This document shows, piece by piece, positions 6,508 through 30,201 of a stretch of 64,000 nucleotides of DNA. The position numbers were made by a program, and so were the translations under genes. The notes beneath the pieces were generated by a model. The model ran no database searches, was not told the DNA's origin, and was given only the letters and a program-made list of their open reading frames with translations. Position 1 is the first letter of the stretch. Each line of letters begins with the position of its first letter. The stretch lies in sequence record PV796108.1, one strand, 5' to 3'.

Positions 6508-6713
6508 TGGATTTCGGTAATATGAACCCGAAAGAGTTACGAGCTATGGCAAGAAAGTTAAATGCCATGGCTCAAGCTCTTGAGTTGGCTCAAAATCCAG
6601 AAAAGTTCATGCAAAAGAAAGTCCGTTCTAAAATGAATGGTGTTAAACGTAAAATGAAGAATCAAGTTATCAATGGTGTTTTGGGTAATTCACTTTCCAA
6701 TAAATCAAAATGA
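6507..6713 (+). CDS. small basic Met-rich protein
   Basis: TAATG coupling to upstream gene, 68 aa. Confidence 0.65.
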   Translation: MDFGNMNPKELRAMARKLNAMAQALELAQNPEKFMQKKVRSKMNGVKRKMKNQVINGVLGNSLSNKSK

Positions 6714-6815
6714 GTTTATCATTAAGACTTGGAAAGCCATGTATTGGATGTAAGTTCATTGAACTTTTATCATAAAAAATAAAAAAAATTGACAATTGAA
6801 AGGGAGTTATTAATT

Positions 6816-14901: not shown

Positions 14902-15143
14902 TAACCAACACTGTCGGAGGTGTTAAATTCGCTTCTTAACATTATCTGCATTTTTAGAAGTATTAATGGGGTAACACAGGGGTATTAAACATAAATCAGT
15001 GGGAGCTTAACGGCTCCCCTCTTTCAGGGAGGAGTAATCCTCCCCTTTCTGTTTTAAGTAATGATTCTTGAATGAGTCCCAAGAGTCAAGTAGGGCAAGG
15101 AAGAGAATTCCCCTAGATTCTCTTCCCTGAAGGAGATGATAAT

Positions 15144-17283: not shown

Positions 17284-17839
17284 GTGTGTAAAAGGTTCTT
17301 TGTCCGTTCGATTCGGGATACACACACCTAAGTACAAGAGTAATGATGCATATACATAATCAGTGCCTCTTTGAATTGTTGCCAATAGGGGTGAATGGGT
17401 TTCGGCTAATTAAAACGTCCAGCTTCAGTATATTTCATTACTCTCCCTTATGGGAAAGCTCATACGTATCGTGTGGGTTTCCTCATAAGGGAGACAGCCA
17501 TGTGACAGAAGTAAGAGTTATTGATCGTAGCTTCCTTGAAATCGAGATGCCAATAGATTCGTATAAGACAAGAGATTAAGAAGTTATTCTTATGCCTGTT
17601 ATCTTATATGAGTTGCGGCCTTACAGAGGTGTCTACTCTGATGCGAATGACCGTAGAAGCACTCTTATGAAAGTCTGAGGTGAATCTCTTATGATTGAAA
17701 GTAACTAGAACTTGCCGAGAAGGGGTAAACTCTGAACCCTTTGGACAGGTGCATCCTTCAAAGCATTAACTTCCTAAGTTCAAAAACTTTCAAGTGAATG
17801 ATAAGGAGTATGGGCTACTAACTATGCTCCTTGTTTTTC
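17284..17839 (+). ncRNA. candidate large structured ncRNA
   Basis: no RBS-supported ORF over about 670 nt; tRNA-like 5' element, long hairpin 17442-17494, terminator 17803-17839. Confidence 0.5.
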
Positions 17840-17988
17840 TTGGATATACAAGGGGGCTTATAACCCCACGTCTCATAATATCTCTTCCATAAATACGACA
17901 TTTTAAAAATTAGGTAAGAGAGCTGGCACTCTTTTATCGGGCGATGTGCGTCGCCTTGTATATCTATTTTCTTAAAGGGGGAAAAGCA

Positions 17989-21797: not shown

Positions 21798-21806
21798 ATA
21801 AACTAT

Positions 21807-22053
21807 CTCGTGCCTTCTGAGGGGTGCTGGTCACATCCCTAGAACAGAAGTGTTTAAAAAATCATTTGAAAATCCTATTACAAAAGTTGGGAGAGGTATT
21901 AGCCTCTCTCAGAGGGCACGAGTACATAATTGTTCTACCTTCTGAGGGGTGCTGCTCATACCCTTTGTAAGACGTTGATTAGTCAAGCTATTTTCCTTCC
22001 TGGGAAAAGGGGAAGTTGGAAGCTTCCCTTAGAGGGTAGAACTACCTTCTGAG
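21807..22053 (+). repeat. two tandem multi-stem units plus a partial third, upstream of dnaE
   Basis: CCTTCTGAGGGGTGCTG at about 21813 and 21938, CTACCTTCTGAG at 22042; each full unit closed by a long inverted repeat. Confidence 0.75.
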
Positions 22054-22077
22054 TAATAAGGGAGAGGGAGTGATAGG

Positions 22078-23367
22078 GTGAAGCAGGATTTATCCTTAGC
22101 GTTAGAGACAATTAATGTCCTAGCGGAAGACCCTATAACAGCGCAATTAGAAGCACAATTTTGTCATTTACACTTACACACACCATGGAGTATGCTCGAT
22201 GGTTTTTGCGTGATTGATGACTTAATTAAGTTAGCGAAAGAAAGAGGTATGACACACATTGGTATTAGTGACCACGGTAACTGTCATGGTCATATAGAGT
22301 TTTATACCAAGTGTAAGAAAGCAGGTATTACACCTGTACTAGGTTGTGAATTATATGAAGCTCCTCAAATGAAGTGGAAGAAAGAGGAGTATGATAAGAT
22401 GTCACCGCAATGGAGTGGCTGGCGTCCAACTATCAACCACCTACTTGTTATCGCTAAGAACAACGAAGGCTATGCGAATCTATTAGAACTATCTAGTCGT
22501 GGTTATTTAGAAGGGTTCTATCGTAAGCCTCGTGTTGATTACAATCTATTAAAACGATTAAGCAAAGGTTTAATCGCAACCAGTGCATGTCTTGGTGGTT
22601 CGATCCCCCAATGTATTTTAAGAGGGAAAGAACGAGTGGGTAGAAACATTGCAAAATTCTATAAGAAGATTTTCGATGAGTTCTACTTTGAAATACAACC
22701 AAGTGAATTGCCAGAACAAAAAATTGTTAATGCCAAATTGATACAATGGTCTAAAGAAATGGATATTCCACTAGTGGTTACAAGTGATGCACACATGCTT
22801 CGTAAAGAAGACAAACCAGTCCATGCTAGTTTAACTACAATTGGACGTAATGAAGATGTATCCGACATTAGTGTGTATGACCATGCTTACTTTATGACTG
22901 TTAAAGAAATGCAAGACTATGGTATTCCACAAGAAGCTATAGACAATGCACAAAAGATCGCTGAGAAATGTGATGTTACAATTGAAATGGGTAACTTACA
23001 ATTCCCAGAGTATGAAGTACCTGAAGGATTTGACTTCGATTCATACTTAGTTCATTTATGTGAACAAGCATTCTTTAAAATGGCACTAGAAAAAGATATT
23101 GATGTTGATTTATACTTACAACGTATGAATTACGAGTTAGATGTAATCAAGCAAAAGCAATTATCTGCTTATATGATTATTGTTTGGGATTTCATTGATT
23201 ATGCAAAACGAAATCAGATATTAGTAGGTCCTGGACGGGGTTCAGCAGCTGGTTCATTGGTTGCTTATTTACTTCGTATTACCAACTTAGACCCTATTAA
23301 GTATGATTTATTATTCGAACGATTCTTGAACCCTGAACGTAATGCAATGCCCGACGTAGATACTGAT
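22078..23367 (+). CDS. dnaE: DNA polymerase III alpha, exon 1 (join 22078-23367, 24136-25147, 25501-26423; 1074 aa)
   Basis: PHP motifs HLHLH, SDHG, SDAH; [10 protein letters not shown]; FERFLNPER; ends PDVDTD. Confidence 0.95.
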
Positions 23368-24135
23368 ATGGAAATGTCCCACCTACTAGTAATAGTAGTG
23401 TTGGAACTCTGTAAACTGCTGGGAGTCCTAAAGCTCTATCAACCAAAACAGAACCTGAATAAGGTATATGCGACAAAAGCCGTATATGGGGAAGCTTCTT
23501 AGAAAACTCTGTATACAAGTGCTTGTGATTGGGGAAGCTTCTCAGAAAACTCTGGTCACTGGTTTGAAAATGATAGAGATGTACAATGGGTAATCAGCAT
23601 CCAAGCTTCGTACGTTATGATAAGGAAGTGTTCTAAGTAGACAATATCATACGCTGTATCCTTTGCGATATGTAATCCCGTAAGTCTACATCTCGTCATG
23701 TAGTTGGTTTTCCCTCCAATGTGAGCCGTCAATGTGAGTGAACAGACCCAGTACTTTGAGTAATAGAAGAAGGTTCAACGACTATCGAAAGCGTAGCTTC
23801 TATGTGAATAGGAGTGAATAAGCGAGTAGAGTAGAATATATCAAACTAAAGTAACATTGGAGTCGGTCCCTATGCGGGAGGACGAAAGATGGCGCCCTAA
23901 AAAGCCTTCTGGTCTCCATGACTCAAATGATATATTCGAAGCGCAGAGTGCCCGACTGATCTTTATTATGCAGACTAAAGCTTGTTGAGGCTCAAATGTG
24001 TAAGAAAGAAGCAAGGGTAATGATATAGTCTAGTCCCGACTGTCTGAATCAAAACAATAAATTGATGAATAGCCGTAAGAGTGAGACCTAACAGCGACAG
24101 ACATGAGAAATATAGCGAAAGCTAGGGTATAAACG
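23368..24135 (+). ncRNA. group I intron 1 in dnaE (768 nt, no endonuclease ORF)
   Basis: exon ends in U, intron ends in G; P AAACTGCTGGGA 23413, Q AATCAGCATCC 23592, R GTTCAACGACTA 23773, S GATATAGTCT 24022; splicing restores PDVDTD/FDYERR in frame. Confidence 0.9.
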
Positions 24136-25147
24136 TTCGACTACGAAAGAAGGCATGAAGTAATTGATTATGTAACACGTAAATACGGAGCAGATAAAGT
24201 ATCTCAGATTGGTACATTCGGTACATTATCAACTCGTATGGCGTTAAAAGATATTGGTCGTGGATTAGGTATCGACCACAACATCATTAATGAAATGAAT
24301 AAACTAATTCCTGTACACCAAGGGAAAGTTGCTTCTATTGAAGATGCATTAAAACAAGTACCTGAATTACAAGAATATCAAACTATGTATCCTGAGCTAT
24401 TTGAGTTAGCTATGAAGGTAGAAAGTTTACCACGTACAAACTCAATCCATGCTTGCGGAATGGTTATTGCGCCAAAATCACTATATGGTTCCATCCCATT
24501 AATTAAAGGAAAAAATGGTGAGATTGTAACGCAATATGAAGGCCCGACACTAGAAAAACTAGGAATTATCAAGTTTGACTTCTTAGGATTAAAGAACTTA
24601 TCTGTAATTGATATTGCACGTAAGTTAGCAAAGGAACGTCATGGTGTTGACATTGACCCCGATGCATTAGAGCCAGAAGACCCTAAGGTATTTGCTACTA
24701 TACAACAAGGATTCACTGATGGATTATTCCAGATTGAATCTGAAGGAATGAAGAAGCTATTCCGTGGTATTAATAAGGTAGACTTTGAGACACTTATTGC
24801 AGGTGTAGCATTGTATCGTCCAGGTCCGATGGAGCATATTCCTGATTATCAAGCTAAGTCAAATGGATTAAAAGAAGTATCCTATCCACATGCTGACCTA
24901 GAACGTATCACAAAGAACACGTTCGGTATTGCTATTTATCAAGAACAAATCATGCAGATTACTGGACAGTTCGGTGGATATTCTCCAGGTAAACAAGATG
25001 GATTCCGTAAAGCAATTGGTAAAAAATCTCAAGAGGTTATGGACAAGGTATTACCTGAATTAAATCAAGATATCTTAGACCACAACTACTCTCATGAGAT
25101 TGCAGAATACATTATTAATATCATTAAACCATTCGTTGGTTATGGGT
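24136..25147 (+). CDS. dnaE: DNA polymerase III alpha, exon 2
   Basis: FDYERRHEV..., SIHACG, KFDFLGLKNL, FQIES, LYRPGP, YQEQIM; ends FVGYG. Confidence 0.95.
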
Positions 25148-25500
25148 TAACATACAGGCCCCGTTACACAGTGATGTGTAAATGAGAACTCCGAATATGC
25201 TGGGACGAACCTTAGAGCCTTTAGTACGAGCATATGCCGTAACAATCTAAAGGATTGGTCAATCAGCAGGGATAGACCTTTTTGCTGACATCAGCAATAT
25301 GGTAGGCCCCCAGAGACTACCAAGGAGTATCTTTATCTTTCTATAATGGAGAGTTTGATCCTACTGGCTCAGGTGTTTTTCACCTCCTTGTCAATGAATC
25401 AAATTAGCGGTTAGCTTTCGAGCTTTCCGTTATGGAAAGATGAAGATGATGGTATAGTCCACTCCCCTACTTAAATATCGGGAAACCGAGGGTTCGAAGG
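25148..25500 (+). ncRNA. group I intron 2 in dnaE (353 nt, no ORF)
   Basis: P1 GGGU/GCCC with U-G; P AATATGCTGGGA 25194, Q AATCAGCAGG 25261, R CAGAGACTA 25311, S GGTATAGTCC 25451; terminal G; splicing restores GYGFNRSHAACY. Confidence 0.92.
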
Positions 25501-26423
25501 TTAACCGTTCACATGCTGCTTGTTATGCATACATCTGTTATCAAACTGCATTCTTCAAAACACACTATCCAATTGAGTTTATGTGTGGATTACTAACTAT
25601 CTTTGGTGAAAACCAAGATAAATGTGTACAGTACATTGAAGAGTCTAAGCGTATGGGTATTAGCGTTCAACAGCCTGACATCAACTTCAGTGAGCGTGGA
25701 TTCTCTATTGATGGTAAGTCCCTTCGTTATGGACTAGCAAGCATCAAGGGGATGGGAGAAGCTGTAGTAGATAATATCTTAGCAGCACGACCATTCAGTT
25801 CACTTGAAGACCTTATCAAACGAGTACCAAAACGTATTATGAACAAACGTGTTATTAATGTTCTATGTCGTTCTGGAGCTTTGGATGGATTAGGTCATGA
25901 GCATAAGAACCGATTAGCAATCCTTCAGTATCTATATATGCTTCGTGGAGATAAAGACGACATCTCTTATGATGTATCTAAGTATGATAAACAAGCCATG
26001 TTGAAAGATGAGAAGGAATTGATTGGTGTTTATGTAAGCTCACATCCATTAGAAGGTATGTGTGAGAAGTTGAACTTAGATTACATTGCAGACAATGAAG
26101 TATTTGAAAATGCTGGCATCATAAGAAGCTTCAAGGAAATTCGAACAAAGAGTAGTAAGTTAATGGCAATGGTTAATCTCGAAACATTATCTGGTGAATT
26201 AAAACTTGTTGTATTCCCAGATGTGTATGAGAAACTAGATGTTCCATTACAAGATGGACTTATCGTTAAGTTCTCTGCTTACTTTAAGTTTAATTTCCAG
26301 TACAATGAACGTTCTTGTTTAGCCAAGAAGTTTACTGTACCAAAGCGGATTAATTCTCAGATACTGAAGAATCAAGTAGCAGAACCAAAAAATCTATTTG
26401 TCATTGAAAAACGTGAACAATAA
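25501..26423 (+). CDS. dnaE: DNA polymerase III alpha, exon 3
   Basis: FNRSHAACY, KTHYPIEF, PDINFS, YGLASIKGMG, SSHPL, C-terminal OB fold. Confidence 0.95.
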
Positions 26424-26467
26424 AGTGGGGCGGGAAACCGCCCTATTTCTTATGAAGGAGGATTCAA

Positions 26468-26728
26468 ATGATCTTAATTGGAATCGTTCTATTTGCTGCA
26501 ATCGTAGCTGCTTGCATCGTTTACCCGATGTATCTACATGGAACAATAAAAAATTTAAAAGGTACTATTGATTTCTACAAAGAAGAAAACGATATGTTAA
26601 GAACTTATATTAGTAAACGCAACTGGACTGAAAACATTCAGAGTCAAGTTAGAAGTGGAAGAGGATTAGAAGTTATTAATGGAGGCCGATCTTATAATAG
26701 AAAGGGGAGAAAAGAAGATGCAAATTGA
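26468..26728 (+). CDS. single-TM plus coiled-coil protein
   Basis: N-terminal TM, RBS AAGGAGG. Confidence 0.7.
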   Translation: MILIGIVLFAAIVAACIVYPMYLHGTIKNLKGTIDFYKEENDMLRTYISKRNWTENIQSQVRSGRGLEVINGGRSYNRKGRKEDAN

Positions 26729-27029
26729 TGAATATCGTGGAATTTTACCAGCTGATGTATTTGATTCATTAAATGCAGGTAACGCTATCCAATTTGAATG
26801 TGCTTATAATCATAGCTCTTTCATGAATAATAGAAAAAAGTATGAAGAATATGTTATGAGCTGGATTGAAAGAATTACGAATCATTTCAATGAATGCAAG
26901 AAAACAAATCATAAGTTAAAGTACCACATATATTCACCACACAATCATGCAAAAGTAATTATATATCCACCTGGATATCAAGAAACAAATACAACACTTG
27001 GAATGAAAACAGAAGACGTATTATATTAG
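26718..27029 (+). CDS. hypothetical protein, C-terminal tag
   Basis: RBS GGGGAG; ends ETNTTLGMKTEDVLY. Confidence 0.7.
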   Translation: MQIDEYRGILPADVFDSLNAGNAIQFECAYNHSSFMNNRKKYEEYVMSWIERITNHFNECKKTNHKLKYHIYSPHNHAKVIIYPPGYQETNTTLGMKTEDVLY

Positions 27030-27046
27030 AAAGAAGTGAAAATAAC

Positions 27047-27217
27047 TTGGTAATTATCGCATGTATTCTTTTTGTAGCAACTATTGTACTAATAGACTAT
27101 ATTATGAATTTAAGAACAAAAATTAAAATGTTAGAGCACGACAATTTCTATTTACGAACGAAGGTCGAAAGGCTTACGATAAAGTTAAAAGATGAAGCTT
27201 TATCAAAGGAGAGATAG
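27047..27217 (+). CDS. single-TM plus coiled-coil peptide, architecture like 26468
   Basis: TTG start, LVIIACILFVATIVL...; not in track. Confidence 0.45.
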   Translation: MVIIACILFVATIVLIDYIMNLRTKIKMLEHDNFYLRTKVERLTIKLKDEALSKER

Positions 27218-27218
27218 T

Positions 27219-27392
27219 ATGCGTAAAATGATAATGTGCATGGAAATCGAAATGCTTGGTTTTAGGTACGACTCAGTTGGTGAGTACACTAAGCATTATG
27301 AAGAAATGATTGAAAAAGGTTACGAACAACAACATCGTGAAGTGAATCAGATTGAAAGTGGTATTGAAGTTTTTTATTACAAACCTCTTTGA
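27219..27392 (+). CDS. hypothetical protein
   Basis: RBS AAAGGAGAG before ATG 27219. Confidence 0.6.
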   Translation: MRKMIMCMEIEMLGFRYDSVGEYTKHYEEMIEKGYEQQHREVNQIESGIEVFYYKPL

Positions 27393-27417
27393 CAATTCAA
27401 AGGTTTATTAGTAGAAT
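27389..27417 (+). promoter_or_regulatory. sigmaA promoter
   Basis: TTGACA-17-TAGAAT. Confidence 0.75.
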
Positions 27418-27419
27418 AA

Positions 27420-27949
27420 TAGTACCACATTACATACTAACTAAACCTTCATGTTTTCAATAATGTGGTACTAGGGGTTGAGTCATCATTGTCCGTAGGT
27501 TTGACTCTACTTGCCGACTACATACAGGGCTGTTACGATAACGGTAATTTTCCTGTCACGTCAGTAAGTATGATAGTAATAGGAGGGAGTTGCTATCAAA
27601 GCAATTGCGATTAGTTGGTTACTCAGGCGCCGAGTGCCAACATAATTCAATTGGACATTTCCAAACGGAAATATTGTTATTCTTCACGTAAGACGGTTTA
27701 GGCGCTGTCTTACAAAAACATGTTGAAATCAGCATATGTTTCTATCGTTTCATACCATTTTTTAGTACATAATATATGAGCCTACTCAACTTATATGTTG
27801 TGTACGAAGTGTTCATAGTGAGTCCTAAGTTCTTGTCCGTTCTCAGGACTCACACAACTATTTGGGTGACTGAAAGCACTTGAATAGAATTACTTACACT
27901 ATTATCTTTATGTTTGCCTTGGAGCTTCCCGTGCTTCAAGGCTTTTTTT
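27420..27949 (+). ncRNA. candidate about 530 nt ncRNA with own promoter and terminator
   Basis: no ORF; 13 bp stem 27420-27432/27461-27473 and at least four more hairpins. Confidence 0.6.
27916..27949 (+). terminator. intrinsic terminator
   Basis: GCCTTGGAGC-ttcccgt-GCTTCAAGGC plus T7. Confidence 0.8.
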
Positions 27950-28006
27950 GTGCAGTTATTACATAGTGATAGCGGGGAAAGTGAACCGCTACAAGGAGGA
28001 GATTCT

Positions 28007-28786
28007 ATGGCAGAATTCGAATTATTTAATTATGGTGATAGTGAAGTAAGAACATGTGTGAAAGACACACAAATTTGGTTTGTTGCCAATGATGTATGTA
28101 ATGTACTAGAAATTGTGAATCCACGCACATCTATTCAACGTTTAGATGATGACGAAAAGGATGTACACAGTGTGGACACCCATGGTGGAGCACAAAACAT
28201 GACGGTTATTAACGAGTCTGGATTGTATTCACTAGTATTAACATCTCGTAAGCCTCAAGCAAAAGCATTTAAGAAATGGATTACATCAGAAGTAATTCCA
28301 GCATTACGAGAACATGGTACGTATTCATTAGAGCGTAAGACTCCAGCTGAAATGATGCTTATGTATGCTGAACAAATGGTACGTCAGGAAAAAGAAATGG
28401 CTGCATTAAAAGAAACACAGCAATTACAACAGTCTCGTATTGAAGGTACAGAACAACGAGTGGAAACATTAATCCATCACATGACTGAAGTACCTGACCG
28501 TGCGAAACTAACACGTAAGATTAATGAACTATGTCGTACAAGAGGATGGAATCAACAAATCTCTTGGCACGAAGTGTATTATATTATAAAGTCGAAGTAT
28601 GGGATTGATATCCGACGTCGTGTACAACTTCAACGTCAACGTATTCAACAAGAACGTCAGCAACAAGGTAAGCCTTTATACCATGAGAAAACAATCGCTA
28701 AGAAGGTTAATGGTTTAGACGTATTAGAAGAACAAGGATTGCTTAATGAAGCATACGAGGCAATTGTGGGGCTTATTACGGCGTAA
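28007..28786 (+). CDS. BRO-N domain antirepressor-like protein
   Basis: FNYGDSEVR, WFVANDVC, INESGLYSL, AKAFKKWITSEVIPALREHGTY; RBS AAGGAGG. Confidence 0.9.
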   Translation: MAEFELFNYGDSEVRTCVKDTQIWFVANDVCNVLEIVNPRTSIQRLDDDEKDVHSVDTHGGAQNMTVINESGLYSLVLTSRKPQAKAFKKWITSEVIPALREHGTYSLERKTPAEMMLMYAEQMVRQEKEMAALKETQQLQQSRIEGTEQRVETLIHHMTEVPDRAKLTRKINELCRTRGWNQQISWHEVYYIIKSKYGIDIRRRVQLQRQRIQQERQQQGKPLYHEKTIAKKVNGLDVLEEQGLLNEAYEAIVGLITA

Positions 28787-28816
28787 GCCCCCTTGCTTTT
28801 CTAAGGAGGGAGAAGA

Positions 28817-29230
28817 ATGGGTGGATTACTTTATCCATATTTATTACTGACCTTAATTGTTATCATTGTTATTTATTTAGTATGTGGCATTCGTGGTAAG
28901 GATTGGTTATTAAAAGCAGGTTTATCAGGTATGATTACATCTACTTTATTTTACTTGCCTATATTTATTATTGTTACCTCTGAAGCAGAAACAACATGGG
29001 CGGTAGTAGAAGAGAAACCAATTAAGATTACAAAGAAACACGAAAATAGTTTTACTTATCAACTAGATGATGCAGCAAAAGAAAAAAGTAGCTTTGTTTA
29101 TTATCATACGACTGATAGTAAAGAAGGAAAGGTTGTTATATCTAGAAAAGTATTTGTAGATGACTTCATTGACAAATGGTTTGATGCACCAAACAACAAG
29201 AAATATGATGTCTACTTACCAAAGGAGTGA
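28817..29230 (+). CDS. membrane protein
   Basis: two N-terminal TM segments. Confidence 0.7.
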   Translation: MGGLLYPYLLLTLIVIIVIYLVCGIRGKDWLLKAGLSGMITSTLFYLPIFIIVTSEAETTWAVVEEKPIKITKKHENSFTYQLDDAAKEKSSFVYYHTTDSKEGKVVISRKVFVDDFIDKWFDAPNNKKYDVYLPKE

Positions 29231-29234
29231 GGAG

Positions 29235-29492
29235 ATGAGAGACTATAAAGGCAAAGAAATTGTTGTCGGAAATAAACGTGCCCATTTTAATTTTTATAAA
29301 AGCATTATCGGAAAGAAAGGTACAGTTACTGAACGTGCGAATATGAAAAGTTGGTTTGTAAACATTGATCGTAGCGAAACTGTAGCTGTTTATGATGAAT
29401 GGATTGTGCATGAAGATGATTTACTTGTTATTCCTAAAGAAAATGAAGAAACAATCACTTCAATGAAACAAGAGGACCTAGCATATGATTAA
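29235..29492 (+). CDS. SH3/KOW-like array protein, C-terminal tag
   Basis: VVGNKRA...WIVHEDDL; ends ENEETITSMKQEDLAYD. Confidence 0.75.
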   Translation: MRDYKGKEIVVGNKRAHFNFYKSIIGKKGTVTERANMKSWFVNIDRSETVAVYDEWIVHEDDLLVIPKENEETITSMKQEDLAYD

Positions 29493-29745
29493 AAGTTATG
29501 TTGGTAAAGAAGTTATTATTGGAGGTAAACGTGCCGCAGACCTTTGTTACTTTAAACTTGTTGGAAAGAAAGCAAAAGTTACTGGGGTTAAAAGTTACAA
29601 AGAATGGTATGTAGATATTGATAGAAGTGAAGATATGGGTATTTACAACAATTGGATTGTACATGAAGAAGATTTACTTGTCACTTCTCAAGAAAATCAT
29701 GAAACAGTAACATATATGAAGCCAGAGGTTTTGCCTTATGACTAA
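29485..29745 (+). CDS. SH3/KOW-like array protein, C-terminal tag
   Basis: IIGGKRA...WIVHEEDL; ends ENHETVTYMKPEVLPYD. Confidence 0.75.
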   Translation: MIKSYVGKEVIIGGKRAADLCYFKLVGKKAKVTGVKSYKEWYVDIDRSEDMGIYNNWIVHEEDLLVTSQENHETVTYMKPEVLPYD

Positions 29746-29962
29746 TAAAAAGTTTTGTGTTGTTGGTGATAAACGTGCAAATGATTTTGGATATGACCCT
29801 ATTGTTGGTCAAAAAGTACAGGTTCTTTCTAAAGATGATAACTATACAACAGTTAGGGTTGATAAGTGGGGACATTGGTATATAGCAAATGAAGATGCAA
29901 TATACAGTGCTGACAACAATAAAGATAATCTTCCTTTTATGAATCGAGATGATGAAATATGA
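29738..29962 (+). CDS. SH3/KOW-like array protein, C-terminal tag
   Basis: VVGDKRA...WYIANEDA; ends NNKDNLPFMNRDDEI. Confidence 0.7.
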   Translation: MTNKKFCVVGDKRANDFGYDPIVGQKVQVLSKDDNYTTVRVDKWGHWYIANEDAIYSADNNKDNLPFMNRDDEI

Positions 29963-30201
29963 AAAATGGAGACATCATGATTGTTGGTCATAAGCGTGCA
30001 ATGAAATATGGATATCGCAAAGCGATAGGATGCAAAGTTATTCTTGGCAAACGACATACAGTTTTCAATGAATTATGGGGAGTAAGGCTGATGCATACAG
30101 ACCCACATCAATTCCATGACTATTTTGTACATGAAGAAGATATTCTTCCTATCACAAATGAACATGCTCTTACGCAATTGAAAGGAGAATTAGACGTATG
30201 A
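29959..30201 (+). CDS. SH3/KOW-like array protein, C-terminal tag
   Basis: IVGHKRA...FVHEEDI; ends TNEHALTQLKGELDV. Confidence 0.7.
   Translation: MKNGDIMIVGHKRAMKYGYRKAIGCKVILGKRHTVFNELWGVRLMHTDPHQFHDYFVHEEDILPITNEHALTQLKGELDV

Follow-up and report, generated by a model that had tools for sequence, protein, structure and literature searches.

Between a small hypothetical gene and an antirepressor-like gene of Bacillus phage Edson lies a stretch of DNA to which no gene has been assigned; does it encode an RNA, and, if so, how would that RNA act? The question concerns positions 27389-27949 of a 64,000-nucleotide (nt) piece of sequence record PV796108.1, the whole of which we call the window (64 kb). 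The 581 bases of the window around this RNA locus are 100% identical to Edson (PV796108, 233.8 kb), a phage whose host is Bacillus cereus. Phage vB_BceM_WH1 (LC597490, 229.8 kb; hereafter WH1) is 89% identical over the RNA locus. In the annotations of both phages the locus is a gap of ~610 nt, flanked by a hypothetical gene of 57 amino acids (aa) on one side and by the antirepressor-like gene downstream.

The original prediction for this DNA described a stand-alone, non-coding transcription unit of about 530 nt and proposed a new phage non-coding RNA (ncRNA), for example a protein sponge or an antitoxin-like RNA. Our analysis favors, at a probability of roughly 0.6, a stand-alone gene for an abundant, highly structured, trans-acting ncRNA of ~527 nt that belongs to Edson/WH1-type B. 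cereus jumbo phages. The RNA forms a new family within a known kind, the large structured phage ncRNA. To our knowledge, few large (>400 nt) conserved ncRNA families of bacteria and phages are known, and those large ncRNAs whose function we know of are ribozymes or the cores of RNA-protein machines.

Gene anatomy and fold

The RNA gene was compared in five full-length variants: those of Edson and WH1, plus L004, L005 and L006, which were recovered through neighbouring proteins together with a partial copy, L012. L005, on a short Logan contig, is 97% identical to the Edson RNA, and L006, on the short contig MTEW01000832.1, is 91% identical. L004 lies in a 229-kb Logan contig; its 5' half is WH1-type and its 3' half ~65% identical, and the search through neighbouring proteins returned no variant more diverged. 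When positions 3439-3950 of L004 are set against 3038-3563 of L002, the RNA gene appears as a mosaic, nearly equal to WH1 up to about hairpin H5 (numbered as in the table) and ~65% identical beyond it, which suggests recombination within the RNA gene.

The locus opens with a sigma-A-type promoter of the predicted TTGACA-17-TAGAAT form, which matches the consensus at 11 of 12 positions and is the top promoter-like site within 26000-30000. Both hexamers are invariant in all relatives, and the spacer and upstream bases differ in WH1, L004 and L012. Transcription would start near 27424. The strong terminator that had been predicted at the other end was likewise confirmed as a stem-loop at 27916-27942 followed by T7, and it is present in all variants. 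Open reading frames (ORFs) inside the RNA locus are all 49 aa or shorter (28-49 aa), and no ORF holds the same position or frame in all five variants. A 35-aa ATG ORF, for example, has lost its start codon in WH1 and is missing from L004, and the 5' half of the RNA gene contains 1-nt insertions and deletions, which are not multiples of three. The claim that the unit holds no ORF thus stands in the sense that none is conserved. Nor did we find a conserved candidate for the translated micro-ORFs that the original prediction had named as evidence to the contrary.

Folded as the + strand, the 527-nt RNA has a minimum free energy of -164 kcal/mol, as compared to -120.8 +/- 6.1 in dinucleotide shuffles (z -7.13), whereas the opposite (-) strand gives a z of -2.95. 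The structure thus belongs to the + strand RNA. It consists of a row of ~eleven consecutive, independent hairpins with short linkers between them, in which no conserved long-range helix and no supported multi-stem junction or pseudoknot was found. Hairpins had been predicted at 27688-27713, 27765-27805, 27818-27853 and about 27859-27886, and these were recovered exactly as H6, H8, H9 and H10, the last at 27858-27887; six further hairpins lie upstream of 27688-27713. The predicted 5' stem was also found. As DNA, P1 is a perfect 13-bp inverted repeat of 27420-27432 with 27461-27473, of which 9-10 bp would fall in the RNA if transcription starts near 27424.

Table. Positions in the window of the RNA gene, its structural elements and the signals that follow it
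Feature	Positions	Strand	Description
Sigma-A-type promoter	27389-27417	+	-35 TTGACA 27389-27394, 17-nt spacer, -10 TAGAAT 27412-27417
P1	27424-27469	+	9-bp stem, conserved 28-nt loop
H2 hairpin	27480-27507	+	Loop variable
H3	27508-27570	+	Long three-segment hairpin; 21 pairs kept
H4 hairpin	27571-27598	+	Purine-rich apical loop; three two-sided stem changes
H5	27602-27653	+	~21 bp; 7-nt apical loop L5 AGGCGCC (27625-27631) invariant
H5b small hairpin	27654-27678	+	Missing from L004
H6	27688-27713	+	10 bp, variable loop
H7 small hairpin	27720-27735	+	Loop L7 keeps AAUCAG
J7/8 unpaired junction	27738-27764	+	5' part GUUUCU(U)AUCG conserved
H8	27765-27805	+	16 bp; invariant loop L8 GCCUACUCAAC (27780-27790)
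H9	27818-27853	+	Invariant loop L9 GUUCUUGUCCGUUCU (27829-27843); five two-sided changes
H10	27858-27887	+	L004 version shorter, different in sequence
3' tail	27888-27915	+	Single-stranded, conserved; UUACUUAC(A/G)CUAUUAUCUUUAUG
Intrinsic terminator	27916-27949	+	Stem-loop 27916-27942: 10 bp, 6 G-C pairs, 7-nt loop; then T7
Small hairpin before Bro-N gene	27970-27991	+	Outside RNA gene; stem AGCGG/CCGCT
Bro-N Shine-Dalgarno	27993-27999	+	Directly 3' of small hairpin 27970-27991
Bro-N gene start ATG	28007	+	58 nt after terminator end

Conserved helices, invariant loops and RNA libraries

Hairpin-by-hairpin folding recovered P1, H2-H10 and the terminator in all five variants, with the exception of H5b, which L004 lacks and which is therefore dispensable or variable. 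The L004 RNA, folded alone, gives the same hairpin series with a z of -6.0. In the RNAalifold consensus of the five sequences, 21 pairs are retained through two-sided changes. The domain H7-H9 was realigned with a covariance model, so that this alignment is fitted to the structure; its five sequences represent about two independent types per half. Pairing holds in 97.1% of its cells, and two-sided changes occur at 11 of its 35 pairs. Among 500 shuffles none reaches the observed level, and when the partners are shifted by 1-3 columns, no more than two such pairs are obtained.

The changes are spread along the RNA. P1 carries one compensatory change from C-G to U-A in WH1 and L004, and in H2 two adjacent pairs are exchanged (CA/UG to UG/CA) between the Edson type and the WH1 type. 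The pairs of H3 show one two-sided change and several one-sided changes. The loop of H4 is AGGAGGG in Edson and GGUGGA in the WH1 type; on our own reading it is Shine-Dalgarno-like, a character that seems to be kept in both variant types though the sequence is not. The stem of H5 is almost wholly different in L004, yet a hairpin of similar length with the identical loop folds there independently, and in L012 the lower H5 stem has been made perfect. L004 retains the H6 stem via one two-sided and four one-sided changes. In H8, where 100% of cells are paired, six changes are two-sided and five one-sided, and the H9 stem is almost entirely replaced in L004.

Set against this drift of the stems, the loops L5, L8 and L9 are unchanged, though the stems of H5, H8 and H9 are rewritten almost throughout in L004. 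The conserved single-stranded elements comprise the L5, L7, L8 and L9 loops, the 5' part of J7/8 and the 3' tail, which is nearly invariant even within the diverged 3' half of L004. L5 includes the palindrome GGCGCC. The 3' domains of Edson and WH1 are 95-98% identical, as compared to mostly 80-92% for the flanking genes; among the latter, this level is matched only at the start of the Bro-N gene, over its first 100 nt (97%).

Public runs that contain the RNA locus, whole or in part, number 19 and come from 12 studies, with soil, food fermentation and ticks among the sources; the soil and fermentation runs X13-X19 contain just a small part of the sequence words of the locus. Four of the 19 runs were mapped on 26400-29300, and two of these four are oligo-dT tick metatranscriptomes from one study. 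Each of these two RNA runs holds one contig on the RNA body, unbroken across H3-H10. The first, of 442 nt, matches 27518-27914 and has 44 extra WH1-type bases that reach back to ~27474; the second, of 357 nt, matches 27543-27895. The Bro-N gene occurs in both RNA runs in short separate contigs only, which are not joined to the RNA contig, and the genes upstream of the RNA are uncovered in one run and covered over 49 nt in the other. In the DNA run X1, a single contig spans the mapped stretch, leaving out just a diverged block of 87 nt (26913-26999). The contig pattern of the RNA runs is not what uniform DNA contamination would yield. The k-mer depth of the RNA contigs was 67.7 and 27.6, versus 3-9 for neighbouring contigs; contig depth cannot rank genes, and we therefore relied on contig position instead.

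Known families were sought with Rfam 15. At gathering score, the whole window gave no match, and with E values up to 10, the region 27200-28100 and the L004 variant gave only chance-level matches, e.g. hveRNA at 17 bits and MIR2630 at 15 bits. The covariance scan that had been proposed as a check on the prediction thus matched no known family. Transfer-messenger RNA (tmRNA), transfer RNA (tRNA), ribonuclease P (RNase P), signal recognition particle (SRP) RNA, 6S RNA, group I/II introns, riboswitches and T-boxes were considered and set aside, with no match by Rfam or ARAGORN, and ARAGORN reported 0 tRNA or tmRNA genes anywhere in the 64-kb window. For tmRNA, RNase P, SRP and 6S RNA, this agrees with what the first reading of the locus had concluded.

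Further members proved equally scarce. A blastn search of 50,697 phage records matched the RNA locus in Edson and WH1 only. A two-loop pattern returned from the JGI metagenomes only the already known MTEW01000832.1, and from the GTDB genomes and IMG/VR none; relatives sought in IMG/VR via a DNA polymerase fragment were not found either. Three matches to patterns of the 3' tail and of H5 (L013, L014 and L015) were rejected on inspection as unrelated chance matches. The literature search found no paper on WH1 or on an RNA of this locus. The covariance model of H7-H9, R1, was run over the whole genomes of Edson, WH1 and the nearest other phage, vB_BauM_KLEB27-3 (OM634661; hereafter KLEB27-3), whose polymerase protein is 44% identical, and only the five members scored as such. 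An nhmmer search of KLEB27-3 added no further RNA member.

At the syntenic place, KLEB27-3 has a 488-nt non-coding gap (L003 22204-22691) before a Bro-N gene, with a fold z of -4.2. By eye, this gap resolves into two short promoter-terminator units of ~215 nt and ~135 nt, the second with a TTGACA-17-TATAAT promoter. The best non-member match of R1 (19 bits, E 0.13) falls on a hairpin of this gap, 22231-22309, which resembles the H9 stem and may be a remote relative or a chance match.

Readings of the locus

The locus has its own promoter and terminator, covarying structure, no conserved ORF and transcript contigs, the properties by which a stand-alone structured ncRNA is recognized. From separate transcription, termination, conserved structure and loop-specific selection we infer a trans-acting RNA whose loops would serve as contact surfaces, and we likewise infer its start site, its timing and the kind of its partner. 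The consensus promoter would be used by the sigma-A form of the host RNA polymerase, probably in the early phase of infection, and the strong intrinsic terminator would release most transcripts; minor read-through could feed the downstream antirepressor-like gene. The stems drift through compensatory changes, and the invariant single-stranded elements would be the working surfaces. The RNA would then act in trans as a scaffold or decoy that offers several different loops to at least one protein or RNA partner of the host or the phage, and the palindromic L5 might also allow the RNA to pair with itself. A sponge of repeated sites is unlikely because the conserved loops all differ; such loops are better explained by a scaffold or decoy with several partners, or by tertiary or quaternary contacts.

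Several points weigh against this interpretation. A search of the Edson and WH1 genomes for sequences antisense to L8 and L9 gave only chance-level sites, with 1-2 mismatches, and the loops have no significant complement in either genome or in the second large RNA of the phage (described below). The evidence for the helices is solid but records few evolutionary events, as it comes from five variants of one narrow phage group. The transcript evidence consists of assembled contigs of one study with unmapped ends, and the contigs do not include P1 and the terminator hairpin, which may be an edge effect or may reflect processing. No promoter is seen between the terminator and the Bro-N gene, so that some role in cis by read-through is possible.

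The last of these points bears on the reading of the locus as a cis-acting leader, i.e., a 527-nt 5' untranslated region that would use its terminator to attenuate the Bro-N or P22_AR_N gene downstream, perhaps via a ligand or a protein. We consider this improbable. The terminator does end just 58 nt before the Bro-N start codon with no sigma-A-like promoter seen between them, a similar non-coding gap precedes the Bro-N gene of KLEB27-3, and the Bro-N contigs of the RNA libraries, unjoined to the RNA contig, are consistent with leaky termination. However, no riboswitch, T-box or leader family matches the locus, and the 5' arm of the terminator has no conserved upstream partner that could serve as an antiterminator: z is near 0 in four of the five variants, and the best upstream partner sits at different positions in different variants. 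The downstream gene, moreover, encodes a Bro-N domain at its N-terminus in Edson and WH1 and a P22_AR_N domain in L004, and the RNA is kept in all of them; because the RNA is retained while that domain changes, it appears to be independent of the downstream gene. No known attenuator needs anything near eleven hairpins with invariant loops, and the KLEB27-3 gap is two separate promoter-terminator units rather than one leader. The same two units at the syntenic place would suit a precursor from which a number of small hairpin RNAs are processed, every one with a separate loop and target, as would the independent hairpins with their short linkers and unrelated conserved loops, and the lack of P1 and the terminator hairpin from the library contigs. 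Yet the unbroken course of these contigs across H3-H10 shows that long molecules exist; processing signals were not recognized, and the loops lack complementary targets beyond chance in the phage genomes. A precursor is thus quite improbable.

Self-assembly is compatible with the favored trans-acting RNA but would make it an RNA-only homo-oligomer of the ROOL, GOLLD or OLE kind, with a kissing contact at L5 and bridges by other loops. Palindromic or highly conserved loops make symmetric kissing bridges that hold the oligomers of OLE, GOLLD and ROOL together, all three being large RNAs of phages or bacteria to which no function has been assigned (PMC12286853). In the present RNA, L5 is invariant though its stem has been replaced, and GGCGCC is rare, with 3 sites in the 64-kb window. 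On the other hand, the RNA has ~60 six-base loop windows, so about one palindrome is expected by chance, and L5 never varies, hence there is no palindrome-to-palindrome covariation to read. The string of hairpins also lacks the multi-stem junctions and pseudoknots of ROOL and GOLLD, and there is neither Rfam similarity nor a tRNA gene nearby. A homo-oligomer is on balance unlikely, though worth keeping in mind, and we would hold as tentatively the more specific proposal of a large phage RNA that self-assembles through its GGCGCC loop and captures a host factor early in infection with L7, L8, L9 and the 3' tail. Very improbable is a locus that is no RNA gene at all but a DNA-level element (an origin, a packaging site or a recombination site) or a carrier of micro-ORFs. 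Inverted repeats exist at the DNA level too, and ORFs of 28-49 aa are present; but the fold is strongly strand-specific with many G-U pairs, promoter and terminator point in the same direction, no ORF is conserved, and the RNA libraries contain contigs of the locus without its flanks.

Surroundings of the RNA gene and known systems compared

The neighbours of the RNA gene are small genes without an assigned role and the Bro-N gene; no toxin family was found among them. The hairpin at 27970-27991 has an identical stem and a changed loop in L004, despite the different N-terminal domain of the gene there, and may be a stabilizer, a processing site or a regulatory site of the Bro-N messenger RNA. 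The domain swap itself is seen when L004 4001-4837 is compared with window 28007-28786, where the C-terminal part of the antirepressor-like protein is 72% identical. In L006 (MTEW01000832.1, 2646-3845), a gap of ~1.2 kb separates the RNA from the next called gene, whose product is just 101 aa long; the RNA is intact in this contig, but the Bro-N gene may have been disrupted.

A second large RNA of the same phage is found on the same strand at 17284-17839, or 17284-17860 by a slightly wider delimitation (~555 nt, fold z -3.8), again with no Rfam match at gathering score. It directly follows the terminator of the upstream gene and lacks a promoter of its own, whereas the RNA at 27389 has a consensus promoter. 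The T-arm-like part of the minihelix with which it starts (TGTCCG TTCGATT CGGAC in WH1) has been conserved in both Edson and WH1. The original prediction had linked the two loci by a shared TTCT(T) motif at 17296-17309, and the similarity is indeed present in Edson, where the motif GTTCTT(T)GTCCGTTC is common to the RNA locus and to the 17296 element, which reads GTTCTTTGTCCGTTC. The link fails on comparison with WH1. There, the 17296 element keeps only TGTCCGTTC (9 nt), the 5' strand and loop start of the T-arm-like hairpin, and the shared motif is therefore probably a coincidence. Searches by blastn-short and nhmmer found no paralogy of the RNA locus with 17284-17839 or any other part of the window, and RNAduplex found no complementarity between the conserved elements and the second RNA (z -1.2 to +1.2). 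The RNAs at 27389 and 17284 are, as far as these comparisons go, two separate, unrelated genes of one phage. Of the new phage ncRNA proposed originally, then, the stand-alone gene with covarying structure, no Rfam match, no conserved ORF and contigs in RNA libraries holds up, and the motif link does not.

Other parts of the window also fold. ORF-free gaps that fold much better than shuffles on the + strand lie at 2018-2328 (z -5.2), 6508-6788 (z -5.3), 14902-15143 (z -6.1), 21798-22077 (z -7.3) and 25186-25580 (z -5.3), values that are rough as they come from 15 mononucleotide shuffles each; none of the five has an Rfam match at gathering score. The last of these gaps sits between pieces of a split DNA polymerase III alpha gene. 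This DnaE-like gene (window ~23500-26423; L002 1-1855; L003 16446-20816) is annotated in separate pieces in WH1 (gp236 and gp237) and in KLEB27-3. An HNH endonuclease gene lies between the polymerase pieces of KLEB27-3, and in L004 an HNH_repeat protein precedes the last piece, which suggests introns or homing elements. Downstream of the RNA locus, window 29235-30201 and L020 479-2472 contain about eight to nine consecutive small genes (74-94 aa) after a 137-aa membrane-like protein. Their products are paralogue-like by eye, and Pfam gave no match for the one product tested.

How does the RNA compare with known systems? If it acts in trans, it shares with the CsrB/RsmZ sponges and with 6S RNA the property of an abundant stand-alone ncRNA that presents structured protein-binding sites. 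CsrB/RsmZ sponges, however, repeat one motif (GGA) in many loops, whereas the conserved loops of the Edson RNA are all different, and for the Edson RNA neither the large central bubble of 6S RNA nor a match to the 6S model of Rfam was found. Type III antitoxin RNAs of the ToxI kind consist of tandem direct repeats beside a toxin gene. Self-comparison of the Edson RNA shows only the inverted repeat of P1, with no internal repeats and no neighbouring toxin family. The sponge or antitoxin-like function offered as an example in the original prediction is neither backed nor ruled out, though the differing loops argue against a sponge of the CsrB type and there are no repeats of the ToxI type.

OLE, which has dedicated protein partners, is encoded on the chromosomes of extremophilic or anaerobic Firmicutes. 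Like the Edson RNA it is large and structured, at ~600 nt, and a palindromic kissing loop mediates its dimerization (PMC12286853); unlike a member of that family, the Edson RNA has no Rfam match. The closest likeness in kind is to ROOL (RF03087) and GOLLD (RF01998), which are also large (>500 nt) phage ncRNAs with extensive conserved structure and conserved loops, some of them palindromic. ROOL and GOLLD usually lie beside phage tRNA islands, a setting that the window, with no tRNA gene in its 64 kb, does not provide. Their models gave no match at gathering score in the whole window, nor with E up to 10 on the locus and L004. The Edson RNA is, moreover, a linear row of hairpins, and it is known from one narrow group of B. 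cereus jumbo phages. Because no model matches, no tRNA genes are near and the architecture differs, membership in ROOL or GOLLD is excluded by the available tests.

The family is narrow and gives no pointer to a specific function, but it is an experimentally accessible case, with a cultivable phage-host pair (Edson or WH1 on B. cereus) and a gene delimited by its own promoter and terminator. Natural variants already flag the nucleotides that matter, i.e., four loops, one junction and the 3' tail, and the same genome offers a second, unrelated large RNA. Identifying what binds the invariant loops could uncover a new means by which phages take over or evade their host with RNA in place of protein. 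ROOL and GOLLD are themselves large phage RNAs for which a function is still lacking (PMC12286853). If self-assembly should prove true, the Edson RNA would be a third, architecturally different phage RNA quaternary machine beside these two.

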